Virus record (IMG/VR): IMGVR_UViG_3300042350_004528
Location: 62,001-126,000 of that record
Length of the DNA: 64,000 nt
Direction: 5' to 3' (one strand)
Every line of letters starts with the position of its first letter. Position 1 is the stretch's first letter. Both the position numbers and the translations under genes were made by a program. This document shows, piece by piece, positions 6,101 through 47,972 of the stretch. The notes below the pieces were generated by a model. It was not told where the DNA came from and did no database searches. It saw only the letters and a list, made by a program, of their open reading frames with translations.

Positions 6101-9100
6101 ACCAATGTATTTAAAACTTAATTGTACATCGGCAATCATTGGTTGTGCCCCAATGCCCTCTGGGTTTAAATCCCAAACAAGTGGTTCATAAGATATGCTC
6201 AAATTATCAATTGCGATTTTTGTATGATAAAAATCGCCAATTCTTAAAACGCAAATAGGTGGTTTACCAAATGCTGTGTTTGAAGCATCGCAAGAGTCTT
6301 CACCATGTTTTCTTTTTATGGTTTCGCCTGGTCTTAAGCATTGTTGCAAAAATGTTAATCTAGCGTTTAATCCTTCGGGTGTAATCGCATGAAATGCTGG
6401 TTGGAAATACTTTAATTTTTGTTTTAAAGAATCGTACATAAAAGGTGTATCTGCTCTAAGTAATTCAAAATAATCACATTCGGTGATCATTTTGTTAATA
6501 ATTCTTTGCGCAATTTCTCTTTTTGTAACATTTTCGTATGTAAGTGGTTTTTCTTCTTGTGTGATAATCGTAGTTTCAACTGGAATGGCTTCTTTTGGTT
6601 TTTTAATTTCCTCTGGCTTGTTGATAACCTCCACTTTAATTTCAGCTCTTCTCGCAAACGAACTTACAATTGATAGTGCACCACAAACAACATCTTTATA
6701 TGGTCTGTCAATTTTAGCCTCAATTGTGCCAATGTGACTTGAATTAACACCTGGTATCCAATTACCTGTTATTGCTTTTTTAGCTAAAGCGTCTGTCTCA
6801 AAACAACAATATTTAACCTTTGTTGTGCTATTAGGGTCTGGTGCGTCAACCGTGTAAAAAATATTTTTATTTGGGCCAGCTGTCTGTGGATTTGGTATCA
6901 TTTCTTTTATAGCATCCGTTGATGTAATACCTTTTGCTTCAGTTAATACAAAAGTAATCGTATCTTTTGTATCTGGCTTAGCACCATCTCTTTTAAAACT
7001 TACAATTGATTGTGTCCCAGTATATAGTTGTTCTAAGTAACTATCAAACCAATCATTAGCCTCAAGTGGGTCATCATTGTCATAATAAATTTTACCCAAA
7101 TCACCTTTACTAATTACCTTTGTTACTAACCATTTAAGTGTTGAAATAAACCTTCTTCTTGATAATATGTTGTTATAATTTGCCGTACCTTGGTCTGGGC
7201 CCAAAGGTGATGCGTGTGTTTCTATTGTAATTTTTAAATCAAATCCTTTATACTTTGGATCGGATAAATCTTGTTCAATAGTTTGAAACTGTTTTTGCAT
7301 ACCGTACCACTTTGGTTTTCCAGATTCGGTTGATTCCATGTAATTTTCGGCGGAATCTTTTCCTATTGTATAATTATATCTAATCCATTCTGGTGGTATT
7401 ATACCCGATGATCTATAATTATTTTTAATTGCTTCAGCATTATTAGTTATATCAACACCCTTTGTTAATTCATAATATCTTGTAAATAAAATATCAAAAG
7501 ATTCTATTTTACCAGTATCATATATTGGGCTAATATTTTTATCAAAATCATTAGGCCTTAATGGTACATCATTTTCAAAAAATAAACAATCTCCATCAAT
7601 TATTGATTTTGGTTTTTCTCTATCAATAGTTATTGTTTGGTCAGCTTCGGGTTGTTTGTACGTTATTACCTTTTCAAGTTTTGGTTTTAATTTTTCATTT
7701 GATTTTGTTAAATCAAGATCACCAATAACTTTTTTAAAATAATCAATATCAGATTGTGTGAATTGATTCCATATTCTTGCTAACTCAAAAACATCAAAAT
7801 CTAAACAACCAGCCCAAAAAGCTGCGAGTAATTCATCAACTTCACCGTCTGTTAATCTTGCTAATTCTTTCTGAGTTAATAAATTTAATATTGATGGGTG
7901 ATCAACAACAATTTTCCAACTTAATGTTCCAGTTCTTTCTGAATTATTATATGTGTAAATTGGTTCGGGTCTACCTAAAAATTGATGGGTTGTCCAATTT
8001 GCAGATGTGTTGTCAGTAAATTTAATATCATATGGTGGAAACCACATAACTCTACCACCATTAGGGCCTTTTTCGCAAGCTGGTAAATCTGTTTTACCAT
8101 AATAGTTGTTTGCTTTATAATCTCTCCAAGCTAAGTTTTCAATTGAAAACATGTATTTTCTTGCACGTCTTTCACCAAAATATTCAACAACGGCATCACC
8201 AGAACCATCACCTAGTCGGCCATAACCAGTATTAACATTTAACTCAGATGGAAATATATTGTAATTACCAAATCTATCGATAACGGAATTTCGCTCCTTT
8301 CTTATTAATTCTTTATATCTAACTAAGTCTGTTACTTTATTGTAAGGTTTAATTTTTGTCCAAACACGACAAAGCTCAGCTTCGTTATACATTTCTCTAT
8401 CACTTCTTTTCCCTGTTGGATCTAAACCTGGAACTAAATAACGATAACCAATAACATCACCTTGTTTATTTAATCTTTCTGTTTTCTTTGGTAATATGGT
8501 TCCGTTTGCTCTAGACATAAAATCATAACCATCGTAAAATTTGGTTATGGTTTGATCAATAGGCGAATTAAACACACCAAATTCAGTTTGAATTCCTTTT
8601 TCAAGCAATTGGCTTGTTGTGTATAATATTGAACATTCTCTAAAATTACCTTGTTTAAATTTGTTTACACTCAATAATGAGCTAGTACCATCTATGTTAA
8701 TTGGTACTGGTTGTGCTTTTTGATTTGTTTTGAAATCAAAAGCTTTATCTTGAGCTGTTGATGATTTCCAAATAAAGTGCGTTTTAACCGAACCGTATTC
8801 ACTCACACCTTGTGGTCTGTCAATACCATCCGTATCAGATCCGCTGTAACCTGGTTCTTCATATTGATTTATAAGGGTTAAATTACCCTTTTTAAGCGAT
8901 TCGACAATAGCTTGGTTACTTCTAACCTGATGTCCATCGGCATCTTGTAGTAAATAAAAAGGATCGTCATACTTACCTTTATTTCCGATATAATATCTAC
9001 CCTCTGGTGTTTCACCAGCTCCTATACCAAAGTAACCACCAATTTTTCTTAACTCTTGTAACTCTTCTTGCCCTAAGAATAGTGTTGTTTCTTGATCGGC

Positions 9101-10630
9101 TAAATAATCTGGTTGGTATTTGTTTTTACCAACATTATAAAATAAAGAATATCTTTGGCCTGAACCAGTTCTTCTTATAAAATACCCATCTCTATCTTCT
9201 TTTCTTGTTACTTGTTTACCCAATAAATTATCAATAAATTTGGCAAAGCCGCTTTTTGGTTCGCCGTCTGAATTAAATTCAACAACATTACCAAAACATT
9301 TAGGCGCCAAATCATCGTCAGTACTCATCGCAAAATCAAATGCTATTGGATTTGTAACACCAGCTAAACTACCAGCAAATTCTGCGGCTTTTCCTAATGT
9401 AGTCGATGCCACACTAATTTCATAATTTCTTTCAAATAAATTAAACCAACCAAACGGATTTCTAACGATATTAGCCGCAGCAATTGGATTTGTTAAAGCT
9501 TCATCTAAGTTTGTACCGCCAAGAGTTTTTCTTTCAATAGCACGTTTAATTCTACTTTCAAAATTAAATTTTAACTCTAAAGCGGCAATATTCATCAATA
9601 ACGTTTCGTTTGTTAACGGAGGCGTTCCACCGTTTAATAAAAACGACATAGGATCCGCAGAATTTGTCATAATTGCTAACGGATTTATTGATGTTTGTAT
9701 GTTTAAGAATGAACTTGGTTCATATTCTTGTGGCCCAGCATAATTAAAAACACCAGAATTATAAGCATCCACATATGGTTTACTAAAAACGTCTGGTTTT
9801 AAACTTAGAACTGTTGGTTCAAATTGATTGATCTCAACTGGAAAATATCTATTTTGTTGTAATTGTAGTTGCAATGCAACTTCTGGCGTCTGATTTGAAA
9901 GTAACGATACGCTTATGGCATTTGGTATATTTAAATCGTTAATTAACGTTAGTTTACCAATTGATTGCAATAATGAGGTATATGTGTAACCACCTTGGCT
10001 TAAATAATCATATAACGGATCATTTTCTGAAGGGTCACTAATATTAATTGGTTTGTTTTTCTTAAATAATTTTTGTCTTTCTACATTCGCGGCGTTATCA
10101 ACTGTACCTGGGTTTAACACAACACTGTCACCAATTGATGTGTCTTGACCAATTCCACTAAGATACCCAGAAGATATATTTGCTAAAATATCTGGTGGTG
10201 TTTGTAAGTTTCTATTTAAATTCTTTTGTCTCGGATTGATAGAATCAGTCACAACATTACCAGGATTGGTTACGTTATAATCGTTGATGTCAGTTGGTAA
10301 GCCTCTACCAGAAAGGTATTGTTGAGTTAAACTTTGATTTGCGGTGATATTACCTATACCAGTTGCAATTTCATTAGGTGTTTGTAAGTTTTTATTTAAA
10401 TTCTTTTGTCTTGGGTTGACAGAATCGGTCACAACATTACCAGGATCGGTTAATTTAACCGAAGCCTTATCTGTTTTAATAACCGCATCCTTACCTAATG
10501 CATCAATATATGCCGCATATAACGCAGCACCACTCAAATCAACCAAACCCAGAACAACATCTGGTGGTGTTTTTAAATTTAATTTTAGAACCTCGTCTCT
10601 AAATTGTTCAGAAAATATCTTAAGACCCAT
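3173..10630 (-). CDS. 2485-aa multidomain baseplate/tail-initiator protein (two tube-like hub segments, OmpA-like domain, CBM-like motif, N-terminal repeats)
   Basis: Tube-initiator-like segments (WFPPYDIKFTDNTSANWTTHQFLGRPEPIYTYNNSERTG; PPICVLRIGDFYHTKIAIDNLSISYEP). OmpA-like ETHAS...YNNILSRRR motif. Directly downstream of the tape measure gene. Confidence 0.65.
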   Translation of the reverse strand: MGLKIFSEQFRDEVLKLNLKTPPDVVLGLVDLSGAALYAAYIDALGKDAVIKTDKASVKLTDPGNVVTDSVNPRQKNLNKNLQTPNEIATGIGNITANQSLTQQYLSGRGLPTDINDYNVTNPGNVVTDSINPRQKNLNRNLQTPPDILANISSGYLSGIGQDTSIGDSVVLNPGTVDNAANVERQKLFKKNKPINISDPSENDPLYDYLSQGGYTYTSLLQSIGKLTLINDLNIPNAISVSLLSNQTPEVALQLQLQQNRYFPVEINQFEPTVLSLKPDVFSKPYVDAYNSGVFNYAGPQEYEPSSFLNIQTSINPLAIMTNSADPMSFLLNGGTPPLTNETLLMNIAALELKFNFESRIKRAIERKTLGGTNLDEALTNPIAAANIVRNPFGWFNLFERNYEISVASTTLGKAAEFAGSLAGVTNPIAFDFAMSTDDDLAPKCFGNVVEFNSDGEPKSGFAKFIDNLLGKQVTRKEDRDGYFIRRTGSGQRYSLFYNVGKNKYQPDYLADQETTLFLGQEELQELRKIGGYFGIGAGETPEGRYYIGNKGKYDDPFYLLQDADGHQVRSNQAIVESLKKGNLTLINQYEEPGYSGSDTDGIDRPQGVSEYGSVKTHFIWKSSTAQDKAFDFKTNQKAQPVPINIDGTSSLLSVNKFKQGNFRECSILYTTSQLLEKGIQTEFGVFNSPIDQTITKFYDGYDFMSRANGTILPKKTERLNKQGDVIGYRYLVPGLDPTGKRSDREMYNEAELCRVWTKIKPYNKVTDLVRYKELIRKERNSVIDRFGNYNIFPSELNVNTGYGRLGDGSGDAVVEYFGERRARKYMFSIENLAWRDYKANNYYGKTDLPACEKGPNGGRVMWFPPYDIKFTDNTSANWTTHQFLGRPEPIYTYNNSERTGTLSWKIVVDHPSILNLLTQKELARLTDGEVDELLAAFWAGCLDFDVFELARIWNQFTQSDIDYFKKVIGDLDLTKSNEKLKPKLEKVITYKQPEADQTITIDREKPKSIIDGDCLFFENDVPLRPNDFDKNISPIYDTGKIESFDILFTRYYELTKGVDITNNAEAIKNNYRSSGIIPPEWIRYNYTIGKDSAENYMESTESGKPKWYGMQKQFQTIEQDLSDPKYKGFDLKITIETHASPLGPDQGTANYNNILSRRRFISTLKWLVTKVISKGDLGKIYYDNDDPLEANDWFDSYLEQLYTGTQSIVSFKRDGAKPDTKDTITFVLTEAKGITSTDAIKEMIPNPQTAGPNKNIFYTVDAPDPNSTTKVKYCCFETDALAKKAITGNWIPGVNSSHIGTIEAKIDRPYKDVVCGALSIVSSFARRAEIKVEVINKPEEIKKPKEAIPVETTIITQEEKPLTYENVTKREIAQRIINKMITECDYFELLRADTPFMYDSLKQKLKYFQPAFHAITPEGLNARLTFLQQCLRPGETIKRKHGEDSCDASNTAFGKPPICVLRIGDFYHTKIAIDNLSISYEPLVWDLNPEGIGAQPMIADVQLSFKYIGGSGLRKYVDELQNALSFNYYANADVYDDRTFANKDLFERNLINLERSFFDNNTLDLIPIVAAAERIVPADFLDDVPYGTIGVITKKRIPTTPGGNYSMDLFTANAYNQSTVYQPYEIVSDQGKFYLRKADNEKDLLTQNTLNGSQAPVTNKKYWEEIKWRNYGEQAFVLEFSNVSKDPNNPNQYLDKSYFNWYEVHYRDIFKQLYETYAEVFNGNMNFNTVTDSNMTLMDLVLNKNYNKRLTKTNSNNIITGTTGSTTSNQGIDLTDPLAEMGLLPNNDDVFNDITGITTGTTNGKYNLFTIFDKEAIERNYVEYGSYDLLNKNLSDQMKTAKLSPLKLHLNPQNYMYKIGDGNTLVSTAGTFDDLSRFDPGNFTGGYQSNTTKTNAEVAGFYFKNYTDYSENINDIVLALGEEMALKIKLNLCHFWHKTDKSKNVFDQYLQNFESTHQKIFTDFLIEKLKTYISGVTEEKRVVLRDLERNTGKLVSLVNGLSVVLDGYDIKTDETKTYRYEVIPNEYKLKTSAETLFGYDPYYKYKTMSFNNYELLEFADIKIVIDDSELNYGNKLKFLSLGNGNYFFKQISKDSKIQQISGNAYTFNNSLPESVAIKNNVSLSPTAANFEVTSGITLNLSYDKNAIPGTTTTLSVQPTGNDDTTGSYAEHYPMTYTFEKLNYEFFEFSNKALDIMLNDNFMSKKFDLDIKFDESKDFYTQVVANDLTSLFYYGDNANFVNTNISYYTLSTGSTAGTVTESIINQINDFVPYNYIIPKSLIQFVPKQSSTNYNTMSGDTINLSGFIDLFFIKIFADLSDTDKADLSKKILAEKPTKGITGNEKAKKQQQDKKLAKIDNILTSIFTIIKDYVTAANQKTNPLYNEYIKNEENVVKKLNKILIDNETYTIFKPDFIANKLLKGGVDDYTVVIKDTYEVKGSSLYNYILFTNTRGLFNITSQSEDPEIIEKATETEFNKYQKELGII
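10197..10452 (-). repeat. Two near-identical ~75-bp direct repeats 180 bp apart, encoding PGNVVTDS(V/I)NPRQKNLN(K/R)NLQTP
   Basis: 10197-10272 vs 10377-10452 align with few mismatches; degenerate copies flank them. Confidence 0.9.
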
Positions 10631-10646
10631 TTTATTGAATAAATTT

Positions 10647-13445
10647 TTATATTAATGGTTGTATTGGTGCAACATTACCATTTTGGTAGTTACCAAAACC
10701 CCTATTGTATGAATCCGTAATTGATTTAAGCCTAGAACCAATCAAATCTCTTGCACCATACATTTGATCCCAAGTAACAACTTTTCCATCGTCTGATTTT
10801 ATTGTAATAACTCCACTATGTTGAACTGCGTTTGTTGAGCCTCGACCACCAGAACCTGCGGCTCTTTCAGCGGCTGCTTGATCTATAAATTGAACCATAT
10901 CTCCTTTGTTAAATTTAGCGTATGTACCGTCTTTATAAATAACACCATCGTCAAATGCTCCAGCGTCATAAGCATCTATACCAGCGTTAGCGGCATCTAG
11001 CCCAATAGATATGGCGGTTCCAACACCTGGGAATGTTGATGCAACACCCGATCCTAAAGCAAGTGCGGCTTGTCCCCAATCACCTTCAGCGGCTTGGCTA
11101 ATAGCATCTATAATACCTATAGCTAAGCCAACACCTGGTATTCTTTTAGCTATTTGTTTACCAACTAACTTACCAGCTGTTTGCGCCCCTAATTTAGCGC
11201 CAATTTTTTTACCAGCAACGGGTATACCTTTTTTAAGTAAAGCTTCTCCAGTCTTTAAACCCGCTTTAGTTGTAAAATTACTAAATGATTTATCACCTTC
11301 CATTTTGCCAGCTAATTCAGATTGGGCGTTTTCGCCGTACATGCCTTTGAGAAAATCACTACTAGCTATTGCTTCTTGTTGCATTTTTAAACCAGCGTTT
11401 TTCATTTTATCACCCAAACCAAATGGTAATGAATCACCTATAATAGCAAGTAAAGCACCCATACCATTTTTTAATATTGGTGTTACAAATGTTATAATTT
11501 CACTGATAATTGGTATCGCAACTTCTTTAAACAACAATCCAAGTGTTTTACCAACCTTAGTCATAAAACTACCGTCACCTTTAAATATCTCTTCGACTTT
11601 TTCAAAGATTGATTTTGCTTTATCTAATAATATTTTAAAACCTTCAGCCAAACCATTTGATCCCATGATTTCTTCGGTAACAAATTTAGCTATTCTGGTT
11701 CCAGCACCCTCAACCATTTGTAAAAATGATTCAAAATCTGTACTACCAAATAATTTATTAAATACAGTTGAAAATCCTAACATAAATCTATCAACGATCA
11801 TTGATAATCTTTCAAGAAGATTTTTTCTTTGTATTGCGGCATCTTCATTTTTCTTTCTAGCATCAATTATTGCCTTTAATTGGTTTTTGTCCGTGATATT
11901 TTCAAGTAATTTTGTTGTACCATCAGACATTCTTATTTCGTATTTACCCTGTTGGTTTAATTGCATTAAACTTGCAATACCTAAACGATCCTCTTCTTCT
12001 AAACCCATTAAACTAAAACCAGCTTTACCGAGTGCGGTCATTTTATCCGCAATCTTAGCTTGTTCTAAAGCAGTATTTTTAAGTTCATTATAATCTTGAC
12101 CTAATGTTTCAGCAGCTATTTGGAGCATTTTTCTTTCAGCTGGTGGTATAATAAAATCTTTACCACTTTTGATTATAGCACCTTTTACTAAACCAGTAAC
12201 TCTTTCAGCTAATTTAGCTGGATCATTCATGGATTCAAATGCGAGTTGCATTGGATCACCAAAATTCTCAGCAAATTTTCCACCTAACACTTGCATTTTT
12301 GCGGATGCCTCAACAGCTTTTTCTAAATCAGAAAAAGAATCTGTAAACGATTCGGTTGATTTTACAATATCAAATCTAATTGCGGTAGCTTTTGCCGCTA
12401 ATTTTGTTAAATTATCTAAACCTCTACCAAAACCAATACCACTTAAACTTTCAACAAGACCTTTGTATGTTTTTAATACTTTTGTGGAGTTTAAATTCAT
12501 TTTAGCGGCCACATTTCTGGCTTTATCGGTTAAGTTAATTGTTCTTTCGAGTGATATACCAATATTATCAAAGCTAGATGCTAATTCAGCGGCACCTTGT
12601 ACGCCTAAATTTGTACCTAAACCTAATTCAATTAATTGTTCAACCTCACGTTCGTTGAATAATCTATTCTTACCAGTGGTTTCACTAAATGTTGACATTA
12701 ACATTGCAACATCTTTCATTGTTCCACCAAATTTCATGGCTGACAATGTAAGTGATGCAAAATTATTTAATAAACCCCTCGATTCTTCAGCCGTTAATCC
12801 AATATCAGCCGCTAAATTTCCAACTGTACTTTGTATTTCTAAAAATGTATTAAAGGCTTTTTTAAGCGGAGCTAAAACCATCTTAACAAGAATGCTACCA
12901 ACCTTTATTAAGGTTGATGCGACAGTTCCTAATATAGAAAATACCGAACCTAATACGCTACCAATACTAACCATAACGTCAGATATAGCAGCGCCGACAG
13001 ATCCCATTCTACCCAACAATGGTATAGTTCTTCTCATTTGTTGTTGTGTAACCTTATTCATTTGGTTATCCAACTTCATTTTGTCTCTTTGTTTCGTTAA
13101 AGCATCAGCAAATGCTGTGTCACCTTTTTTTCTAGCTTTTAATATTTTTAACTCTAGTTTTTCAATTAAAGCATCATTTTCTTTAATTTTTTTACTAAAC
13201 TCTAAATTTTGTTTTTGTTGTTCTCTGATTTTTTTACCAACACTAGCAACTCTCTTTAATACATTTAACCCTTTGACATCGGATTTTAACATATCTTTTC
13301 TTGCTTTACCAACGTTCATTTCTGCGGTGTATACATCATTAAGTATATCACGCATTTGTTCAGCATTAACGACACCAGCAGCTAGTGCTCGTTCAAGAAC
13401 ACCGCCAGCTTCAGTAAATTGCCTAAAAAGATCTCCTTGAGCCAT
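10647..13445 (-). CDS. Tail tape measure protein
   Basis: 932 aa, Ala/Gly/Lys-rich and helical, with a hydrophobic Gly-rich C-terminal region (IPGVGLAIG...FPGVGTAIS); downstream of tube and chaperone genes. Confidence 0.85.
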   Translation of the reverse strand: MAQGDLFRQFTEAGGVLERALAAGVVNAEQMRDILNDVYTAEMNVGKARKDMLKSDVKGLNVLKRVASVGKKIREQQKQNLEFSKKIKENDALIEKLELKILKARKKGDTAFADALTKQRDKMKLDNQMNKVTQQQMRRTIPLLGRMGSVGAAISDVMVSIGSVLGSVFSILGTVASTLIKVGSILVKMVLAPLKKAFNTFLEIQSTVGNLAADIGLTAEESRGLLNNFASLTLSAMKFGGTMKDVAMLMSTFSETTGKNRLFNEREVEQLIELGLGTNLGVQGAAELASSFDNIGISLERTINLTDKARNVAAKMNLNSTKVLKTYKGLVESLSGIGFGRGLDNLTKLAAKATAIRFDIVKSTESFTDSFSDLEKAVEASAKMQVLGGKFAENFGDPMQLAFESMNDPAKLAERVTGLVKGAIIKSGKDFIIPPAERKMLQIAAETLGQDYNELKNTALEQAKIADKMTALGKAGFSLMGLEEEDRLGIASLMQLNQQGKYEIRMSDGTTKLLENITDKNQLKAIIDARKKNEDAAIQRKNLLERLSMIVDRFMLGFSTVFNKLFGSTDFESFLQMVEGAGTRIAKFVTEEIMGSNGLAEGFKILLDKAKSIFEKVEEIFKGDGSFMTKVGKTLGLLFKEVAIPIISEIITFVTPILKNGMGALLAIIGDSLPFGLGDKMKNAGLKMQQEAIASSDFLKGMYGENAQSELAGKMEGDKSFSNFTTKAGLKTGEALLKKGIPVAGKKIGAKLGAQTAGKLVGKQIAKRIPGVGLAIGIIDAISQAAEGDWGQAALALGSGVASTFPGVGTAISIGLDAANAGIDAYDAGAFDDGVIYKDGTYAKFNKGDMVQFIDQAAAERAAGSGGRGSTNAVQHSGVITIKSDDGKVVTWDQMYGARDLIGSRLKSITDSYNRGFGNYQNGNVAPIQPLI

Positions 13446-35671: not shown

Positions 35672-35703
35672 AAAGGGGTTAAGTGATTAACCCCTTTTTT
35701 TTT
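35672..35703 (+). terminator. Rho-independent terminator
   Basis: AAAGGGGTTAA-GTGA-TTAACCCCTTT followed by a long T-run. Confidence 0.9.
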
Positions 35704-38980: not shown

Positions 38981-39262
38981 ATGAGAGAATATTTTAAAGC
39001 ACAGTTAGCTTATTACCCACAAATAACGGAAGAAATTTTAGATAAAATTGAATTTAAAACCGTTTGGTCTGGAAAAAGAATACAACCTGGTGATAAAGTT
39101 GTATATGCGTATGTTTATTTATTAAATACTGATGACCTTAAAGCAATCTCTTTTTTAGAAAGAGAATTACATGAAATAAGTGCTAAATTCAAATTGATCA
39201 GAGTAGAAGAAGACATTATGCCAATTTTGGCGTTTAAAGAAGATACAAAAAAAAGAGATTAA
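38981..39262 (+). CDS. Hypothetical protein
   Basis: 93-aa ORF abutting both neighbours. Confidence 0.6.
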   Translation: MREYFKAQLAYYPQITEEILDKIEFKTVWSGKRIQPGDKVVYAYVYLLNTDDLKAISFLERELHEISAKFKLIRVEEDIMPILAFKEDTKKRD

Positions 39263-39263
39263 A

Positions 39264-39935
39264 ATGGATACTTTTTCAATAACAATTGCTTTCTCAACGA
39301 GAAAAATAAATCAAGAGTATGTTGAACATGTTAAAAAATCATGTGCATGCCCAGATTTAGAGTTGTTGGTTTATGAAAACAATGGTGATAAAAGTTTAAC
39401 TGAAATTTATAATGAAGTTTTAAAAACAGCAAAAAATGATATCATTGTTTTCTGTCATGATGATTTAATTTTTGATACACCTTATTGGGGTAGAAAATTA
39501 GTTAAACATTTCAAAAGAAACCCAGATTACGGTATAATTGGAATTGCTGGTACCAACAATTTAATAAATGGTAGGTGGTGGTCGTTAAGGGAATCAATGC
39601 ACGGCATTGTCAATCATACGGATGGTAATAGAAAATGGACAAGTATGTTCTCTCAACCACAAGGCAATAAAATAAAACAAATGGTTATACTTGATGGTTT
39701 GTTTTTTGCTGTTGATAAGACAAAAATTAAACATGGTTTTGATGAGGATTTTAATGGGTTTCATTTTTACGACTTATCATTTTGCATACCAAATCATTTA
39801 GATGGTGTTAAGATTGGTGTTATAACGGATATAATGATCACACACTTATCTGTTGGTATGACAAACCAAAAATGGGAAGATAATAAAAATTTATTGGAAA
39901 AAAAATATGCGGATAAGTTTCCGATGAGAATATGA
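39264..39935 (+). CDS. Glycosyltransferase family 2-like protein
   Basis: IYN...AKNDIIVFCHDD, LDGLFFA, FHFYDLSFC. Confidence 0.8.
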   Translation: MDTFSITIAFSTRKINQEYVEHVKKSCACPDLELLVYENNGDKSLTEIYNEVLKTAKNDIIVFCHDDLIFDTPYWGRKLVKHFKRNPDYGIIGIAGTNNLINGRWWSLRESMHGIVNHTDGNRKWTSMFSQPQGNKIKQMVILDGLFFAVDKTKIKHGFDEDFNGFHFYDLSFCIPNHLDGVKIGVITDIMITHLSVGMTNQKWEDNKNLLEKKYADKFPMRI

Positions 39936-40594
39936 AAAATATTAGTGGTTTAAAAAATATCCATGTGGGTGAAGATATCTACATTTTAGCATCTGGTAAA
40001 TCTGTTGATTTTTTTGATGAAGATTTTTTTGATGGTAAAATACTTATCGGTGTTAACCAAGCGTATAAATTTACTTGGTGTGATTACCTGGTTAGAAAAG
40101 AAGTTAAATTTATTAAACAGAGTATAGAAACAGATTCCGTTGTTATTGTTTCTGAGTACGATAGTGGTAATTTAAATTCTGGTGAACAAAAGTTAAATAC
40201 AAACAAAATTGATCACCCTAATTTATATTATTTTGAACACTTGGATAATCAACATGCAAGGCTTGACACATCTGTTTTTGGTACAGATAAAATTGTCGTT
40301 AGTTTCTCAACTATTACATCAGCCATACACATTGCAGCCTACATGGGCGCTAAAAACATTATTTTAATTGGTCATGATTGTGGTACGATTGATGGCGAAA
40401 TGACGTTTAAAGGGTATTATGATTCCATTAAAGATACACCATGGGTGAGCTGGGATCAGTATAAATCTTGGTTAAAAATAATTGAAGGGCAAACGATAGA
40501 AGTTAAAAAACAAGTAAAAAAACACTATGGTGCTAATGTTGTATCAATGCTACCGTTTGTTTCACTGAACCTAGAAAATCATTTATATTTGTGA
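39932..40594 (+). CDS. DUF115/Maf-like (sialyltransferase-fold) protein
   Basis: GEDIYILASGKS...IGVNQA...STITSAIHIAAYMGAKNIILIGHD. Confidence 0.7.
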   Translation: MKNISGLKNIHVGEDIYILASGKSVDFFDEDFFDGKILIGVNQAYKFTWCDYLVRKEVKFIKQSIETDSVVIVSEYDSGNLNSGEQKLNTNKIDHPNLYYFEHLDNQHARLDTSVFGTDKIVVSFSTITSAIHIAAYMGAKNIILIGHDCGTIDGEMTFKGYYDSIKDTPWVSWDQYKSWLKIIEGQTIEVKKQVKKHYGANVVSMLPFVSLNLENHLYL

Positions 40595-41223
40595 TAAAAT
40601 ACATTATACCAGCAAGACGAAACTCAAAAGGGTTCCCATTTAAAAATAGAAAATTAATAAATTATACGTTAGATAATTTACCAAAAAACGTATATGACGA
40701 TGTTATTTTAACTACCGATGATGAAAAGTTATTGGAAATTGGTTTAGAATATGGTATAAAATGTATTAATAGAAATCCAAGTTTAGCTTTAGATAAAACT
40801 TCAACTAAAGAAGTTATGGATGACCTAAAGTTTCAGGGTATTATTACTAACACAGACATTGTTGTTATGTTATATTTAACATATCCGCAAAGAAATTGGT
40901 TAGATATAACTAACGCTTTACAGTTTTTTGATAATAAAAATGCAAAAAGCCTTTTGTGTAAAAAAGAAATAACAACAACCCACCCATATTTATATTTACT
41001 TGAAGTTGGTGATTTTAAGGGTAAACAATTAATCCCCCACAATCTATACAGAAGGCAAGATTATCCAAAAGTTTTTGAAATATCTCACTTTATATCGATT
41101 TTTAAAGTCAGTGAACTCAAAAATTTAAATAATAATCTTTATAATAACGACACCGTTTTTTATCCAATTGATGATATAATTGATGTTGACACTGATAAAG
41201 ATTTAGAAAGGTTTTTAGAATAA
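40591..41223 (+). CDS. neuA: Acylneuraminate (CMP-nonulosonate) cytidylyltransferase
   Basis: IIPARRNSKGFPFKN, LTTDD, LYLTYPQR, IDVDTDKD; GTG start. Confidence 0.88.
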   Translation: MIKYIIPARRNSKGFPFKNRKLINYTLDNLPKNVYDDVILTTDDEKLLEIGLEYGIKCINRNPSLALDKTSTKEVMDDLKFQGIITNTDIVVMLYLTYPQRNWLDITNALQFFDNKNAKSLLCKKEITTTHPYLYLLEVGDFKGKQLIPHNLYRRQDYPKVFEISHFISIFKVSELKNLNNNLYNNDTVFYPIDDIIDVDTDKDLERFLE

Positions 41224-42374
41224 TGGGTATTTTTATAAAAAATAAAACAAAAAGGGTACAAAAAGATGACACAAAACAACCAGTGTTAACTAATACTGCA
41301 ACTAATAAATCTTTAATAGGTGAAGAGGTTGTCGTTGCTGAAAAAAAAGCAATAAAAAAAGGATTTGGGGATAAAAAAATTGTAAACAAAGAACCAGTAA
41401 AGGCCACAATTAATTCTGTGGCGGTTGGTAAAGAGGAAAAAAAGTCCGTGTTGTTATTTGAAAACAACGAAAAAAATGAACCGACCACAAATTCATTAAT
41501 TAATAAAATTAATAAATCTTCAGGTAGAAATTCAATTTTTGACAAAGTTGTTGCCCCAGAAATTAAAAATTCAAATGTAGCTAAATCAAATGACAAAGTT
41601 GTTAACGACATTTATGATAAAGCTAGAAAAAATATTAGTTTTATAAAAAATAAAAATAATAAGTACTATGATTTTGTTTTCACTAAAGGGTACATAAATG
41701 AAAAAGATATTAAACATGTTAACACTGAACTAGATAAACAATTAAATAATTTAAAAATAAATCCGTCAACAATGGATTTATACTTTTTTAAATCGTTTAT
41801 AAAAGATAAAACAATCGCTCTTATAGCTAACTCGTCTGATTTATTAAATAAAAAACTTGGTGCGGAAATAGATTCTCATGACATTGTAGTTAGATTTAAT
41901 TCATATAAAATATTAAAAGAGGATACTGGGGAAAAATTAACTATACATGTTAGCATTTATTTACAAAATGAAAATTTAAATAATTTTGCACCTATTAGAT
42001 TTATCCTTTCGGGTAATAAAATAAACTGGGCTAAAAAAATATTAACATTAAATAAGTTTAACCAATCTACAATATTAAAGTATAATCACCACTCAACATT
42101 ACCAGGTAATTTTAGAGACGATTCGCCAACCACAACGGGATTCGCCACCTTAATTTTACTACTTAAAATTGGTGGTTTTCAAAAAATTAATATGTTTGGT
42201 TTTGATTTTTATCAAAACGGTAATGATAGTTTATTTAGAACGGACGTTGGTATGGAATCCCCAATATCTACCGTTCATGATTATTTCTTCGAAAAAGAAT
42301 TTATGATGGAATATTCATATGAATATGACGATAAAAAAAATATAATTACTTTTTATGATTATAGCACATTTTAA
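41223..42374 (+). CDS. GT29-like sialyltransferase with a Lys-rich N-terminal extension
   Basis: Sialylmotif L (IALIANS..LL....G.EID.HD.VVRFN), motif S (PTTG...MFGFD) and VS (HxxxxE). Confidence 0.75.
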   Translation: MGIFIKNKTKRVQKDDTKQPVLTNTATNKSLIGEEVVVAEKKAIKKGFGDKKIVNKEPVKATINSVAVGKEEKKSVLLFENNEKNEPTTNSLINKINKSSGRNSIFDKVVAPEIKNSNVAKSNDKVVNDIYDKARKNISFIKNKNNKYYDFVFTKGYINEKDIKHVNTELDKQLNNLKINPSTMDLYFFKSFIKDKTIALIANSSDLLNKKLGAEIDSHDIVVRFNSYKILKEDTGEKLTIHVSIYLQNENLNNFAPIRFILSGNKINWAKKILTLNKFNQSTILKYNHHSTLPGNFRDDSPTTTGFATLILLLKIGGFQKINMFGFDFYQNGNDSLFRTDVGMESPISTVHDYFFEKEFMMEYSYEYDDKKNIITFYDYSTF

Positions 42375-43203
42375 AGAAACGCCAATAGCACATGCACCAG
42401 AAGCGATTAGTGATGTTATAAATAAATATACAGATCATAAATCGTATGTTTTTGGCTACGGTTACCCGAATAAAAAATTAATACCAAAAACCGATATACT
42501 CCATTTACATAATAAGGATAGAAATTATAATTTTAATAAAAAAGTAATACAGTATCATAGTGAACCTTTTAGGGTAACATTGGATGTAAAAACAAAAAAA
42601 TTAGTAATAGCTCAGTACCATGCAACCTTACCAGAATATAATAATTGTACCGTTGTTAGAAACCCAATTGACATTTATGATGTAAAATTTTTACCAAAAT
42701 ACCAAAATAAAAAAATAAGAATTGGTTATTCTCCGTCAACAGTCAGACCACTATCAATTTGGGCAGATAAAGGATATACTGAAACATATCCCATTTTACA
42801 AAAAATAAAATCTAAATACGGAAACTCCGTTGAAATTGATATAATTGTAAATGTTTCATTAGACGAATGTTTAAAAAGAAAATCTCTATGTAATATTTTT
42901 ATTGATGAAGTAAAAACAATATCATATCATAGATCTGGGTTAGAATCGTTATCAATGGGTATTCCAACAATATGTTCAATTGGCCCATCCGTTGAAAAAC
43001 TTTTATTAAATTCTTCTGGTGCGCCAAATAGCCCGTTTATTAATGTAAATCATAATCAGTTAGAAAAAAAACTAATTGAATTAATAAATTTGGGGGTGGG
43101 TAATTTGTTGGAAATTGGTTACAATAATAGACTTTGGATGGAAAAATATTGGTCACCAGATACTATCGCAAACGAATATATTGAAATATATAAAAAAATA
43201 TAA
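42355..43203 (+). CDS. Glycosyltransferase, GT-B-like
   Basis: IRIGYSPST...KG...IFIDE...GLESLSMGIP. Confidence 0.7.
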   Translation: MIIAHFKETPIAHAPEAISDVINKYTDHKSYVFGYGYPNKKLIPKTDILHLHNKDRNYNFNKKVIQYHSEPFRVTLDVKTKKLVIAQYHATLPEYNNCTVVRNPIDIYDVKFLPKYQNKKIRIGYSPSTVRPLSIWADKGYTETYPILQKIKSKYGNSVEIDIIVNVSLDECLKRKSLCNIFIDEVKTISYHRSGLESLSMGIPTICSIGPSVEKLLLNSSGAPNSPFINVNHNQLEKKLIELINLGVGNLLEIGYNNRLWMEKYWSPDTIANEYIEIYKKI

Positions 43204-43204
43204 A

Positions 43205-43876
43205 ATGAAAAAATATTCAATTATAATACCAACGATGTGGATGTCTAGTCATTTATTTAAAATGTTAGACTTTTATGAGGAAAATGAATTAATACAAGAG
43301 GTTATAATTATAGATAATGCGCCAGAAAAGGGGCAACCAATACCAAAACAATTAAGTAAGTTAAAACTACATACTAAGGGTAAAAACATATATGTTAACC
43401 CAGCCTGGAATTTTGGTGTTTCATTAGCAATTAGTGATTATATTATAATTGCTAATGATGATATATTATTTAATAAAAAAGATTTTGATGAGTTACTAAA
43501 TAAGTCTTTTGAGTTTTTAAACGAAAACACCATAATTGGCCCATCAATGTATTGTTTTAAACAAAATCCCGAGAATTATAGTTTGCGATATAATGGTTTA
43601 AAAATCGAAAAGCTTAATGTAGGATTTACTTATGGTTTTGGTACATTTATGATAATGAAAAAAAACTCTTATACAATAATACCAGATGATATTTTAATAT
43701 TTCATGGAGACGTCATTCAACACAGAACAAATGATGTGTTTTTATTTAGTGGTATTGAGATAGATACACCGATGAGCGTAACACTTAAAAGTGATCCACA
43801 AATACATAATTTAGCTAAATTAGACCACGCCAAATCATTAAAGTATGATGTCAAAAAATTAATTAAATTTAAATAA
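43205..43876 (+). CDS. Glycosyltransferase family 2
   Basis: YSIIIPT, IIIDN, NPAWNFG, IANDD; start moved to ATG 43205. Confidence 0.8.
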   Translation: MKKYSIIIPTMWMSSHLFKMLDFYEENELIQEVIIIDNAPEKGQPIPKQLSKLKLHTKGKNIYVNPAWNFGVSLAISDYIIIANDDILFNKKDFDELLNKSFEFLNENTIIGPSMYCFKQNPENYSLRYNGLKIEKLNVGFTYGFGTFMIMKKNSYTIIPDDILIFHGDVIQHRTNDVFLFSGIEIDTPMSVTLKSDPQIHNLAKLDHAKSLKYDVKKLIKFK

Positions 43877-44521
43877 ATGGCTAACGGAATTTACAAAATA
43901 ACAGAAGAATTTGAAAAAGCGTTAAGTGATTACACAGGCGCACCATATGTTGTTACATTAGATAACCAATCAAACGGTTTATTTTTATCATTATACTACG
44001 AAAATAATATTAAAAAAAGTATAACAACCCCAAAAATTACAATACCATCAAGAACATACCCATCGGTACCGTGTGAAATAATACACGCGGGCTTAAAAGT
44101 TGATTTTTATCCTATTGAGGGGACAAAATTAAAAGGCGCTTATGAATTAAAGGGTAGTAATGTCTGGGATTCCGCTTTAAGGTTTACCGCAAATATGTAT
44201 TTACCATCAACACATATGTGCATATCTTTTACGGGCCCATATAAACATTTTAAATTAAGTAAAGGAGGTGCTATTTTAACTGATAGCCATGAAGCTTATT
44301 TATGGTTTAAGAGGGCTAGATATAGTGGTAGGAGGGAATGCTCTTATCATGACGATCATTTTGATATGTTGGGTTGGAATTTTTATATGATGCCAGAATT
44401 AGCGGCACGTGGGTTGTTGTTAATGAATCAATTTTACAACATCGATGGCACAAAAAAAGAAAACGCGGATTTAGAATTACCATATCCAGATTTATCAAAG
44501 TTTGATATTTATAAACAATGA
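43877..44521 (+). CDS. DegT/DnrJ/EryC1/StrS-type sugar aminotransferase (short form)
   Basis: FEKALSDYTGAPY...SNGLFL, WDSA, SFTGPYKH...GGAIL, GWNFYM; only 214 aa. Confidence 0.8.
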   Translation: MANGIYKITEEFEKALSDYTGAPYVVTLDNQSNGLFLSLYYENNIKKSITTPKITIPSRTYPSVPCEIIHAGLKVDFYPIEGTKLKGAYELKGSNVWDSALRFTANMYLPSTHMCISFTGPYKHFKLSKGGAILTDSHEAYLWFKRARYSGRRECSYHDDHFDMLGWNFYMMPELAARGLLLMNQFYNIDGTKKENADLELPYPDLSKFDIYKQ

Positions 44522-45240
44522 AACACATAATTGTCTTTTTGGCTTATGAAAATTTTGATATTATTAAAAAATCATTTAATTCGTTAAAAAATTGCGATTC
44601 GGATTTTTTTATTATTGAAAATAACTCTAAAAATTCAAATATCATAAAAGAATTTTTTATAAATGAAAATTTAGTCGGGTATATTCAATTTATAGAAAAT
44701 GCTGCGGCAAATGCTGTAAATATTTTTATTAAAAAATATTATAACTTATTATCCCAATATGATTATGTGACAATAACTGATGGTGATTTATTTCTATATG
44801 ACGCAACAGAAACATTTGGTGAAATAATTTCATCGTTTAATCATAATAATTGTTATGTTTGTGGCGTTGCCTTATATAAAGGTAATTATTATGAAAATAC
44901 AACCAATAGAATTATTGGTACCGAATATTATATTGAACATATGTTAAGTAAGTCGGAACATAAATTAGAGGCAATAAAAGGTAGAACAGGTAATCATTTA
45001 TTGACCTTTAATAAAGAAAGTCTACACGTTATTAAAGACATCCATTATATTGATTCAAATATTTTTAAAAAAATAAAAGAGCTGGGTGGATCTTGTTATA
45101 GAACAACAAAAAATTTGGCCTATCATTTAACTTGGGATGTATATTTTGATGGTAATCCATATTATGAGAATAAAAAAAATAATTTAAAAGAAATCTGGTC
45201 ACAATCTGATTTTGATTTTAAATATAATGTTATTATATGA
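44518..45240 (+). CDS. Putative GT-A fold glycosyltransferase
   Basis: IIENNS, YVTITDGD, HLTWD; glycan-island context. Confidence 0.5.
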   Translation: MKHIIVFLAYENFDIIKKSFNSLKNCDSDFFIIENNSKNSNIIKEFFINENLVGYIQFIENAAANAVNIFIKKYYNLLSQYDYVTITDGDLFLYDATETFGEIISSFNHNNCYVCGVALYKGNYYENTTNRIIGTEYYIEHMLSKSEHKLEAIKGRTGNHLLTFNKESLHVIKDIHYIDSNIFKKIKELGGSCYRTTKNLAYHLTWDVYFDGNPYYENKKNNLKEIWSQSDFDFKYNVII

Positions 45241-45824
45241 AAAGAGCATTAATTGGTGCTGGTGGTTTTGCACGTGAAATTAAATCGCATATTGGTGATG
45301 AATCAATGATATGTTTTGTTGATGATAGTTACTATGTTGGTGATACCTATACGTTACCATTAAGTCACTTTAATCCAAATGAATATGAGGTATTGATTGC
45401 TATCGGAGACCCACGTGCAAGATATGAGATAAGTAATCGCTTACCTAAAGATACTAAATATTTTACGCATATTGATAAACGAGCAAATATATTAGATGAA
45501 AATATTGAAATTGGCGAGGGTAGTATTATTTGTGCTGGCTGCATATTAACAACAAATATTAAAATAGGTAAACATGCCCATTTAAATTTACAAACAACAA
45601 TCGGGCATGATACAACCATAGGTAACTTTTTTACAACAGCCCCTGGAGCAAAAATATCTGGTAATTGTGTAATACACGATTTAGTTTACATTGGGACAAA
45701 CGCTTCTGTTAGAGAAAAAATAACGATCCATAGCTTAACAACAATAGGTTTAAATGCTGGTGTGGTAAAAGATATAACTGAACCAGGTGTTTACGGCGGA
45801 ACGCCATGTAAAAAAATTAAATAA
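45237..45824 (+). CDS. NeuD/PglD-family sugar acetyltransferase (hexapeptide repeats)
   Basis: LIGAGGFARE, AIGDP..R, left-handed beta-helix repeats, YGGTP. Confidence 0.9.
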   Translation: MKRALIGAGGFAREIKSHIGDESMICFVDDSYYVGDTYTLPLSHFNPNEYEVLIAIGDPRARYEISNRLPKDTKYFTHIDKRANILDENIEIGEGSIICAGCILTTNIKIGKHAHLNLQTTIGHDTTIGNFFTTAPGAKISGNCVIHDLVYIGTNASVREKITIHSLTTIGLNAGVVKDITEPGVYGGTPCKKIK

Positions 45825-45825
45825 T

Positions 45826-46440
45826 ATGCAAAATACAGTAGAATCTTTAAATTTAATTAAAAAAATATCAGATGAGATTAATAATATGACATTTCATCAC
45901 CATTATTATGTTTTATATGATATAGCTAAAGAATTTGGAACCTCACCAATTAACTATGTTGAAATCGGTTGTTATGCTGGGGGCTCCGCTTGTCTTATGC
46001 TACAAAGGCCAAATACTAACGTAATTAGTATTGATTTAGGTGTACCAATTAAACCAGAAGTAGTTAAAAATAATGTAAAAAAATTAAATATTTTAAATAA
46101 CAATTACAATTATATACAAGGTAACTCACAAAAAAATGAAACGGTTAGTGAGTTAAAAAAATTGGTTGAATTGATAGATATTTTATTTATTGACGGTGAC
46201 CATAGTTATAATGGTGTTATTAACGATTTTAATTTGTATTCTAAAATGGTAAAACCAGGTGGTTATATTATTTTTGATGATTATAACGACAAACAACATA
46301 GCCCTCAAGTTAAAGTAGCTGTTGACGACTTATTAAAAAATAACTATGAGTATGAAATATTTGGTACATTACCAAATATTTTTGGCGCTAGGCCTAGTGA
46401 ATTAAAAGAGGGTAATTGTTTTATAATTAAAAAAAAATAA
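45826..46440 (+). CDS. Class I SAM-dependent methyltransferase (likely glycan O-methyltransferase)
   Basis: YVEIGCYAGGS, LFIDGDHSY, GGYIIFDDY; start moved to ATG 45826. Confidence 0.85.
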   Translation: MQNTVESLNLIKKISDEINNMTFHHHYYVLYDIAKEFGTSPINYVEIGCYAGGSACLMLQRPNTNVISIDLGVPIKPEVVKNNVKKLNILNNNYNYIQGNSQKNETVSELKKLVELIDILFIDGDHSYNGVINDFNLYSKMVKPGGYIIFDDYNDKQHSPQVKVAVDDLLKNNYEYEIFGTLPNIFGARPSELKEGNCFIIKKK

Positions 46441-46441
46441 T

Positions 46442-47122
46442 ATGTTAGCAATTGTCATATCCACGTATCAAAGAAATGATGGTACAACACCCATTCATTT
46501 AACCAAAGCATTAACTTCGATTAAAAATCAAACATACCAAAATTATATGGTATTTTTAATTGGCGATCGCTATGATAATAATGATGAGTTTATAAGATTA
46601 GCGACATCAATAATTGATTCTGATAAAATGGTGTTTGTTAATTTACCAAATGCTGTTGAAAGAGAAAAATATCCGTTTGGTGATGTACGTCTGTGGTCAT
46701 CTGGCGGCGTAAATGCAGTTAATTTCGGTATTAAACTTGCTTTGGAACAAAATTATAATTATATTTGTAGACTAGATCACGATGACTGGTGGGCGCCAGA
46801 ACATTTGGATTTAATAAAAGATAAATTAAACGAAGATCATATAATAATAGCAACGAAAGGTATGCATTTCACTGATAAAATATTACCTGTAAAAGATAGT
46901 AACCCATTCTACCCTAAAAGTTCAGATTTATTACATTCGTCTGTTTGTATAAATTTTAAAAAAACTCCGTTAAGGTATCGCGATGTTTTTGCCGAAGAAG
47001 GTAGACCTTATGCGGCTGATGCTGATTTATGGGATAGATTGTCTTATTATATGGTAAAAAACAATAAAACAGGTTATTTAATAAACAAGGTAACGTGTTA
47101 TCATAGTAATGAAAGAAGATGA
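46442..47122 (+). CDS. Glycosyltransferase family 2
   Basis: IVISTYQR, SIKNQTY, RLDHDDWW. Confidence 0.85.
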   Translation: MLAIVISTYQRNDGTTPIHLTKALTSIKNQTYQNYMVFLIGDRYDNNDEFIRLATSIIDSDKMVFVNLPNAVEREKYPFGDVRLWSSGGVNAVNFGIKLALEQNYNYICRLDHDDWWAPEHLDLIKDKLNEDHIIIATKGMHFTDKILPVKDSNPFYPKSSDLLHSSVCINFKKTPLRYRDVFAEEGRPYAADADLWDRLSYYMVKNNKTGYLINKVTCYHSNERR

Positions 47123-47126
47123 CTAA

Positions 47127-47972
47127 ATGAAAAAGGTAAAAATAATAGCGGAAATAGGGATTAATCACAATGGCGATATTGAAATTGCCAAACAATTAAT
47201 TATGGTGGCGAAAGCGGCTGGATGTGATTACGTAAAATTTCAGAAGAGAAACCCAGATGTGTGTGTTCCAGAAGACCAAAAAAATAAAATTCGCCAAACG
47301 CCATGGGGTGAAATGACATATCTGGAATACAAATGGAGAACTGAATTTAATTATGAACAATACTCTGAAATTGATGAGTTTTGCAAACAAATCGGTATAA
47401 AATGGTTTGTGTCTGTTTGGGACAAAGATAGCGTAGAGTTTATGGATATCTTTAGAAGATTAGGTAAAGCCTACGATGGTACAATGAAAATACCATCAGC
47501 GTTGATTACGGACTTAGAACTTTGTAAATACGCAAGAGCCAATTGTGATAAATTAATTATTTCAACTGGAATGAGTACTGAAAAAGAGGTTAGAGCCTGT
47601 ATTAGTACCTGCAATCCAGATGTTGTTATGCACACAAACTCAACTTACCCATGTCCTGTTGAAGAATTAAATTTGAATTACATAAATTGGCTTAAAAGTT
47701 GGTACCCAGGCTTAGATATAGGATATAGTGGTCACGAGTATGGTTTAGTTACAACATTTGCAACAATACCTATGGGTGTCACTTGGATTGAAAGACATAT
47801 CACCTTGGATAGAAATATGTGGGGTTCCGATCACTCAGCTTCAATAGAACCATCTGGTTTATTCAAGCTAGTTAAAGGTATACGTGACATTGAGTCATCT
47901 TTAAGTATCCCAATGAAACCTAGAGAAGTTTTTGGCGGGGAATTAGCTAAACAAAAAAGCTTGAGGAAATAA
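47127..47972 (+). CDS. neuB: Nonulosonic acid synthase (NeuB/PseI/LegI/Kdn-9-P synthase family); lacks the C-terminal AFP-like domain
   Basis: IIAEIGINHNGD, VKFQ, IISTGM, MHTNSTYP, GYSGHE, IERHITLD...GSDH. Confidence 0.95.
   Translation: MKKVKIIAEIGINHNGDIEIAKQLIMVAKAAGCDYVKFQKRNPDVCVPEDQKNKIRQTPWGEMTYLEYKWRTEFNYEQYSEIDEFCKQIGIKWFVSVWDKDSVEFMDIFRRLGKAYDGTMKIPSALITDLELCKYARANCDKLIISTGMSTEKEVRACISTCNPDVVMHTNSTYPCPVEELNLNYINWLKSWYPGLDIGYSGHEYGLVTTFATIPMGVTWIERHITLDRNMWGSDHSASIEPSGLFKLVKGIRDIESSLSIPMKPREVFGGELAKQKSLRK

Follow-up and report, generated by a model that had tools for sequence, protein, structure and literature searches.

A likely soluble, bacterial-type GT29 glycosyltransferase of a freshwater tailed phage and its proposed CMP-nonulosonate mechanism

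Described GT29 enzymes and the phage protein

The closest described systems are the bacterial glycosyltransferases of family GT29 (Petit et al. 2018), e.g. those of Sinorhizobium meliloti and Streptomyces, for which the absence of a membrane anchor and of the cysteines of sialylmotifs L and S has already been described and which have been put forward as the origin of the eukaryotic enzymes (PMC5811610); the same paper makes no mention of phages or viruses. We report that a stretch of viral DNA of 64,000 nucleotides (positions 62,001 to 126,000 of IMG/VR record IMGVR_UViG_3300042350_004528; hereafter the window, with coordinates counted from its first letter) contains an open reading frame (ORF), 41223-42374 on the plus strand, that encodes a genuine but uncharacterised GT29 member of the bacterial type. 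We consider it likely that the product is a soluble, cysteine-free GT29 enzyme of a freshwater tailed phage of approximately 299 kb, with a mechanism that uses a nonulosonate activated with cytidine monophosphate (CMP).

The phage protein has the family and the set of motifs in common with the bacterial GT29 proteins, as well as the missing anchor and the missing L-S cysteine pair, and is 31-37% identical to them over the catalytic half. Moreover, bacterial GT29 loci contain NeuB and a cytidylyltransferase, as does the phage locus. The phage protein differs from the bacterial ones in being carried by a virus and in belonging to a separate viral and metagenomic clade, and its N-terminus is a basic disordered module whereas the bacterial proteins have tetratricopeptide (TPR) repeats. 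An initial annotation of the window had described its motifs as eukaryote-style. Since the absences that appeared striking there are described for bacterial GT29, they represent the known signature of the bacterial branch, and with the nearest cellular relatives being bacterial the label does not hold.

Compared with the vertebrate enzymes (ST3Gal-I, structures 2wnf, 2wnb and 2wml; ST6Gal-I; ST6GalNAc-II; ST8Sia-III), the order of motifs L, S and VS and the histidine and glutamate of VS are common to both, whereas identity is only 13-19% and the catalytic domain is approximately 40-70 residues shorter. The phage protein has neither the type II membrane anchor nor the L-S disulfide cysteine pair of opisthokont-type GT29: in the family profile alignment to ST3Gal-I, Ile198 occupies the position of the motif L cysteine and Phe319 that of the motif S cysteine. 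Sialylmotif III also appears not to be conserved, and the phage protein is predicted to be cytoplasmic whereas the vertebrate enzymes are Golgi-luminal.

Among viruses, the GT29 name has been given earlier to a phage protein, UniProt A0A6J5NLG3 ('Glycosyl transferase family 29 [uncultured Caudovirales phage]'), by automatic annotation. This protein is 30% identical to the one reported here (Foldseek E 1e-14 in BFVD), and it differs in length (492 versus 383 aa) and architecture. The gene in the window is a phage-encoded member of a known bacterial GT29 branch. BFVD also contains GT29 proteins of giant viruses, poxviruses and herpesviruses, those of the pox- and herpesviruses being host-derived and of the vertebrate type, and in a virome study GT29 is simply listed among viral auxiliary genes (PMC11656804). 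Similarity of the family profile to GT42 (Campylobacter CstII, Pasteurella PmST) and to Maf/MptE-like transferases is only marginal (E 0.014-0.08).

Family membership, fold and sialylmotifs

The gene and its motifs are as follows.

41223-42374, plus strand: GT29-family glycosyltransferase gene, 383 aa, the single ORF spanning 41808-42293
41808-41900, plus strand: sialylmotif L, residues 196-226
42126-42212, plus strand: sialylmotif S, residues 302-330 (29 residues, PTTTG...GFDFY)
42276-42293, plus strand: sialylmotif VS, HDYFFE (H352-x4-E357), residues 352-357

The Pfam model PF00777 (Glyco_transf_29) matches the protein with 38.7 bits, i.e. above its curated gathering score of 23 (E 9.8e-10), as the initial annotation had anticipated, and a precomputed match to this model is present in all 23 of 23 close homologues. 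With the single sequence, a search of the PDB recovered pig ST3Gal-I at E 5e-4; with a profile built from 34 catalytic domains (alignment A2) the E-value for ST3Gal-I was 1e-15 over 172 profile positions with motifs L, S and VS aligned. No family was assigned to the protein in scans of NCBIfam and PHROGs, and it did not qualify as a member of the MptE-like/Maf family PF01973.

The AlphaFold2 model, built from 32 sequences, has high confidence for residues 150-370. In a Foldseek comparison of this model with the PDB the best 30 matches were eukaryotic GT29 structures without exception; the closest were ST3Gal, ST6Gal, ST8Sia and ST6GalNAc with CstII-type and MptE-type folds coming second, an outcome in favour of the initial annotation, which had proposed a comparison with ST3Gal/ST6Gal and CstII, and a comparison with Swiss-Prot models agrees. 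The predicted structure is a member of the GT-A variant-2 sialyltransferase fold, and model residues 143-381 superpose on residues 72-343 of the ST3Gal-I chain in the structural alignment.

All three motif peptides named in the initial annotation lie within ORF 41223-42374 in the order given there, as seen in the translation of 41808-42293. For L and VS both peptide and position were exact; for S the coordinates were right while the quoted peptide had lost one threonine, the full peptide of 29 residues being PTTTGFATLILLLKIGGFQKINMFGFDFY. Motif L aligns to CAVVGNSGNL...IDSHDFVLRMN of ST3Gal-I and also to motif L of ST6Gal-I, and in an alignment of 32 homologues (alignment A1) its residues N203, G213, I216, D217, D220, R224 and F225 are invariant. 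According to the family profile, residues 302-327 of motif S align to PSTG...LYGF of ST3Gal-I; the invariant residues here are T304, G306, G326 and F327 (A1) together with Y330 (A2). Motif VS aligns by the same profile to VHDGDFE of ST3Gal-I including H352 and E357. E357 does not vary in either alignment; for H352 this is true of A2, while in A1 its conservation is 90% or higher. Taken over A1 and A2, which reach down to homologues with 22% identity, N203, D217, R224, F225, G306, G326, F327 and E357 are invariant in both. The catalytic base of GT29 enzymes is the VS histidine (PMC10225777), and His352 is the predicted base of the phage protein.

The protein has no cysteine at all, including the L-S cysteines whose absence was noted in the initial annotation, and it has no hydrophobic segment that could span a membrane, in keeping with the solubility proposed there: the highest mean Kyte-Doolittle value over 19 residues is 1.29 and is located within motif S. 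The (D/E)(D/E)G and HP motifs of bacterial families (listed in PMC5811610), considered since GT42 has the same fold, were not seen in residues 191-383 by direct reading, and the family profile matches CstII at no better than E 0.014-0.06. The gene is under purifying selection with ratios of nonsynonymous to synonymous substitution rates (dN/dS) of 0.08-0.16. A second GT29 gene in the window was considered and rejected, the family hidden Markov model recovering only ORF 41223-42374.

The N-terminal half and the relatives of the protein

The initial annotation had treated approximately 190 N-terminal residues as one low-complexity region. Residues 1-190 are indeed rich in lysine (18%; 19% over residues 1-142) and asparagine (13%); they do not form a single filler, and three segments are distinguished.

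41223-41402, plus strand: conserved basic N-terminal segment, residues 1-60 (MGIFIKNKTKRV...), predicted to be disordered, with a predicted local distance difference test score (pLDDT) below 50
41403-41648, plus strand: Lys/Asn-rich disordered linker, residues 61-142, pLDDT 31-43, fast evolving
41649-41792, plus strand: N-terminal helices of the catalytic domain, residues 143-190, with helices at 146-154 and 160-176

While residues 1-142 as a whole are predicted to be disordered, constraint on residues 1-60 is as strong as on the catalytic domain (dN/dS 0.04-0.16) and the start MGxF(I/V)(K/R)NK is conserved in alignment A1. The linker is more relaxed (dN/dS 0.28-0.35), and the homologue in locus L011 is 47% identical in the linker versus 78% in the catalytic part. 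Confidence of the AlphaFold2 model is 65-80 at residues 141-160 and above 90 from residue 161, and in this model the GT29 catalytic fold includes residues 143-190.

P0129, a protein of a related phage (locus L109), has residues 1-98 in common with the window protein, and only those; its catalytic domain is related at the profile level only (hhalign probability 87%, E 4e-6). Its gene has the same slot as the GT29 gene of the window, between a synthetase gene (product 88% identical) and NeuB (85% identical). Since P0129 thus keeps the N-terminus in an equivalent slot with a swapped catalytic domain, the N-terminus behaves as an independent module. In other relatives it is replaced by a different domain of approximately 300 aa, by TPR repeats or by a cytidylyltransferase. 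The conserved basic residues 1-60 together with the disordered linker may represent a targeting or tethering module rather than filler. As a separate observation, the P0129 gene in L109 directly adjoins NeuB and approximately 4.7 kb of intervening transferase genes are missing there. Carbohydrate-binding repeats were suspected in the linkers of P0010, P0022 and P0129; these gave no Pfam match and we make no claim for them.

On the minus strand, ORF 41117-41611 (164 aa, Phe/Leu-rich) was considered as a gene and rejected: it is antisense to the Lys-rich linker, and conservation and selection are on the plus-strand ORF. Most likely it arises from the codon composition.

A word-indexed search recovered 43 proteins, approximately 23 of which are metagenomic relatives with 41-99% identity; the remainder includes 'glycosyltransferase family 29 protein' entries from S. 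meliloti and many Streptomyces that are 31-37% identical over the C-terminal half. An exhaustive search gave 425 clusters at 50% identity (E <=0.001). In GTDB, taken as one genome per species (185,579 genomes), 303 encode relatives, mostly in Streptomyces, Isoptericola, Cellulomonas and Demequina with a few Proteobacteria, and none of these exceeds 36% identity. The bacterial members are thus by no means as sporadic as the initial annotation had assumed.

A quick maximum-likelihood tree, calculated without eukaryotic GT29 sequences, places the window protein in a clade of 37 IMG/VR and metagenomic sequences with a support of 97 in the Shimodaira-Hasegawa-like approximate likelihood ratio test (SH-aLRT), and all 18 labelled bacterial sequences in a separate clade (SH-aLRT 82, i.e. 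under the 95% at which branches of the tree are starred). As the tree is unrooted and was computed with a fast setting, it gives the grouping and not the direction of transfer. A second viral clade consists of short GT29 proteins of approximately 200 aa, and two multi-domain proteins that are probably bacterial, P0053 and P0054, are nested within the phage-rich clade. Two adjacent genes with GT29 domains are present in loci L012, L014 and L018, and in L014 and L018 one is from the clade of the window protein and the other from that of the approximately 200-aa viral proteins.

Donor genes, proposed function and phage context

The genes that bear on the donor and on the neighbouring transferases are listed below.

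39932-40594, plus strand: MptE-like (Maf/DUF115-type) gene, Pfam PF01973 with 28.7 bits, under the cutoff of 34.6
40591-41223, plus strand: CMP-ulosonate synthetase gene (CTP_transf_3), Pfam PF02348 with 43.9 bits
42355-43203, plus strand: GT-B gene ('glycosyltransferase group 1'-like), 282 aa, overlapping the 3' end of the GT29 gene by 20 nt
47127-47972, plus strand: NeuB-family nonulosonate synthase gene, 281 aa, Pfam PF03102 with 204 bits

The TAA stop codon of the synthetase gene overlaps the ATG of the GT29 gene by one base (TAATG), and all 12 related IMG/VR loci contain the synthetase, GT29 and GT-B genes. NeuB is found in 11 of the 12, the remaining locus ending early. Moreover, one metagenomic protein of 696 aa (P0048) combines an N-terminal CTP_transf_3 domain with a C-terminal GT29 domain. 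The translationally coupled synthetase, the constant co-occurrence, the fusion in P0048 and the composition of the bacterial loci link the GT29 domain to a CMP-nonulosonate donor, and bear out the tie to the adjacent synthetase that was made in the initial annotation. Because the GT29 gene adjoins genes for an activated donor, it is probable that the phage decorates some glycan with a sialic-acid-like sugar. Homology, fold and gene linkage support the function suggested in the initial annotation, a soluble cytoplasmic nonulosonyl-transferase using the product of the adjacent synthetase.

On the basis of what is known for the family, the C-terminal domain (approximately residues 143-380) would adopt the GT-A variant-2 sialyltransferase fold and hold the CMP-sugar by motifs L and S, and His352 of VS would act as the base that activates the acceptor hydroxyl, such that the linkage is formed by inverting transfer. 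Gene context suggests a CMP-activated nine-carbon ulosonic acid as donor; the sugar would be made by NeuB (47127-47972) and subsequently activated by the cytidylyltransferase (40591-41223). The GT29 protein together with the downstream GT-B protein and the other soluble transferases of the surrounding glycosylation island (35.7-51.6 kb, approximately 16 kb) may then build a nonulosonate-containing glycan in the cytoplasm of the infected cell. No hydrophobic segment was found in the 29 ORFs of the interval 32.9-54.7 kb, and no flippase, polymerase, priming transferase or exporter in the island, which argues for assembly of the glycan on a soluble or peripheral cytoplasmic acceptor. As the island encodes no membrane protein, this acceptor would be a phage protein, e.g. 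a virion component, or a host envelope precursor at the cytoplasmic face of the membrane. Two minus-strand ORFs in the window, 3173-10630 (2485 aa) and 10647-13445 (932 aa, with a peptidase/endolysin-like segment), probably encode tail or baseplate proteins and are candidate targets for glycosylation.

A more specific version, for which we see a possible but rather doubtful case, is that this self-encoded soluble pathway (NeuB, CMP-synthetase, GT29, GT-B and further transferases) caps the virion proteins of the phage itself, with the N-terminal module delivering interchangeable transferase domains. The latter is suggested by P0129, which keeps the module with a different catalytic domain. If so, this would be a 'sialylated' bacteriophage.

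The following counts against a CMP-nonulosonate transferase. The PF00777 alignment is restricted to the motif L half, residues 196-280 (profile positions 55-152). Sialylmotif III, taken as (H/Y)-Y-(W/F/Y)-(E/D/Q/G), is not recognisable; in the profile alignment DSLFR (335-339) lies opposite HHYWE of ST3Gal-I, so that in this alignment the motif III histidine is not conserved, although the conserved F329 and Y330 immediately C-terminal to motif S could be the equivalent. To our knowledge no GT29 of the bacterial type has been characterised biochemically, and the literature searched contains no study in which a GT29 from a bacterium or a phage was examined biochemically. The best NCBIfam model for the synthetase is PseF (E 4e-13), with a score far below the cutoff for that model, and NeuB scores 202 bits with the NCBIfam NeuB model and 149 bits with PseI, both far below the equivalog cutoffs. 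With both donor enzymes below all cutoffs for named pathways, the sugar may resemble Neu5Ac, Kdn, Leg or Pse. Neither a UDP-GlcNAc 2-epimerase nor a 4,6-dehydratase gene was found among the scanned ORFs of the window, and a search for transcription of the GT29 gene gave no convincing evidence.

The apparently non-canonical motif III would fit a GT29 domain that is dead, or that is only a CMP-sugar hydrolase or a glycan-binding module, e.g. one draining or binding sialic-acid-like sugars of the host, in which case the function could reside in the long N-terminal extension. This is very improbable given that the remaining motif residues for donor binding and catalysis vary little or not at all in 32-34 homologues down to 22% identity, that the catalytic part is under strong purifying selection and that the phage encodes synthesis of the donor, not its removal.

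The scores of the synthetase also bear on the suggestion that the donor is the eight-carbon Kdo, or another CMP-activated acid sugar, in place of a nonulosonate. In a 2026 paper GT29 domains are credited with ulosonic acids such as Kdo, the case being a GT29-GT107 fusion in a capsule protein of E. coli K6 to which the Kdo polymer is attributed by inference (PMC13171606), and the cytidylyltransferase of the window does match CMP-Kdo synthetase models weakly. We regard such a donor as unlikely: the Kdo models score E 2e-4 versus 4e-13 for PseF, a NeuB-family synthase, i.e. one for nine-carbon sugars, accompanies the gene in 11 of the 12 related viral loci, and no KdsA-type gene was found in the island.

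In addition to the 20-nt overlap, the GT29 and GT-B genes always occur together: the GT-B partner is found at E <=4e-73 in each of the 12 related viral loci and is even better conserved than GT29. The GT-B protein has no Pfam match, and in the Atlas it neighbours clusters of glycosyltransferase family 1 (score 0.95-0.98). The pairing raises the alternative that GT29 is one half of a polymerase which, together with the translationally coupled GT-B, makes an alternating hexose-nonulosonate chain similar to teichulosonic acid or a capsule rather than a terminal cap. Several relatives would suit this reading. P0011-P0013 are fused to a second N-terminal domain of approximately 300 aa, and P0053 and P0054 combine a GT-B domain with a second GT29-like domain. 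The Streptomyces and S. meliloti relatives adjoin a gene for a GT8/pyruvyl-transferase fusion. The Streptomyces locus has a polysialyltransferase-like gene, and a Gal-Kdn polymer is known from Streptomyces walls (PMC11481543); the S. meliloti relative is in a capsule locus with KpsM-like and KpsS/C-like export genes, NeuB, a cytidylyltransferase and a phosphatase. In contrast, the island of the phage has no export, ligase or lipid-carrier gene and no membrane protein, and at least six other transferases in it suggest a complex heteroglycan rather than a simple repeat; processive and single transfer are not separated at the level of sequence. On balance we hold a polymerase to be conceivable and not probable, and a soluble CMP-nonulosonate transferase remains our preferred reading.

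The GT29 enzymes for animal sialylated glycans are difficult to produce since they depend on a membrane anchor, on disulfides and on glycosylation (PMC10225777). A naturally soluble and cysteine-free GT29 with an adjoining donor pathway would be a practical candidate for expression in E. coli, and could give the first biochemical characterisation of the bacterial GT29 branch.

The MptE-like protein encoded just upstream of the synthetase is possibly a second CMP-nonulosonate transferase. It matches PHROG 4603 'alpha-2,3-sialyltransferase' (E 6e-8) and its gene is restricted to the closer relatives; it has no profile similarity to the GT29 domain, and no link to a solved structure or to deposited phages was found. 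The island also encodes several GT2 and GT1-like transferases, a DegT-like protein, a NeuD/PglD-type acetyltransferase, a CmcI/TylF-type methyltransferase, an RfaE-domain-II-like nucleotidyltransferase and a cupin. The NeuB homologue covers positions 2-263 of the 329-position NeuB model, such that it lacks the C-terminal portion of the usual enzyme; though short, it is well conserved in related phages. The DegT-like protein (43877-44521, 214 aa) matches aminotransferase models in two separate pieces (profile positions approximately 24-100 and 189-270), its central part therefore seems to be absent, and it may not be an active aminotransferase. The genes between 43202 and 47122 (GT2, DegT-like, a 240-aa ORF, NeuD/PglD-like acetyltransferase, methyltransferase and GT2) constitute a variable cassette among related phages, and in a lake metagenome contig breaks and piled-up variants were seen at 44228-44523. 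Just ahead of the first island gene (35702) there is a hairpin with an 11-bp stem followed by a T run (35672-35697), the strongest terminator-like site in 35-52.5 kb; promoter-like and terminator-like sites in this region are not enriched over shuffled sequences.

The window is phage DNA, as the initial annotation had it, and encodes a tail sheath, a T4-type baseplate protein, a large terminase, a family-B DNA polymerase and a helicase. A catalytic-domain query (41742-42371) is 100% identical to the IMG/VR contig UViG_3300042350_004528 of 298,833 bp. The family is widespread in bacteria, and with P0053 and P0054 nesting in the phage-rich clade one may ask whether the gene is bacterial, i.e. 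a host fragment or an assembly chimera. The chance of this we consider negligible: the locus is between phage replication and structural genes on the 299-kb viral contig, G+C is uniform across the window (27-35%), independent ENA and JGI assemblies show the same order of genes, and no cellular relative among the GTDB species genomes is more than 36% identical. Furthermore, 94-100% of the sampled words of the stretch are contained in 17 DNA runs, nearly all of them lake or freshwater metagenomes, and the phage is abundant and widespread in lakes.

Megablast of 39000-47000 against 50,697 deposited phage genomes gave no match; one of these records has a distant GT29 match and three have NeuB. The phage spends approximately 16 kb on a soluble glycosylation island with a nonulosonate module, whose nonulosonate synthase and GT29 genes are very rare among deposited phages.

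As to RNA, one freshwater metatranscriptome contains a single contig of 221 nt that lies within the synthetase gene. Finally, two small runs (X19 and X20, labelled 'RNA?' and 'organism A') contain a contig of 200-230 nt over 41132-41360 with a word depth of 110-220 and 0-3 mismatches; it represents the synthetase/GT29 junction only, with almost nothing else of 39300-45200, and may stem from an amplicon, from contamination or from a small RNA.

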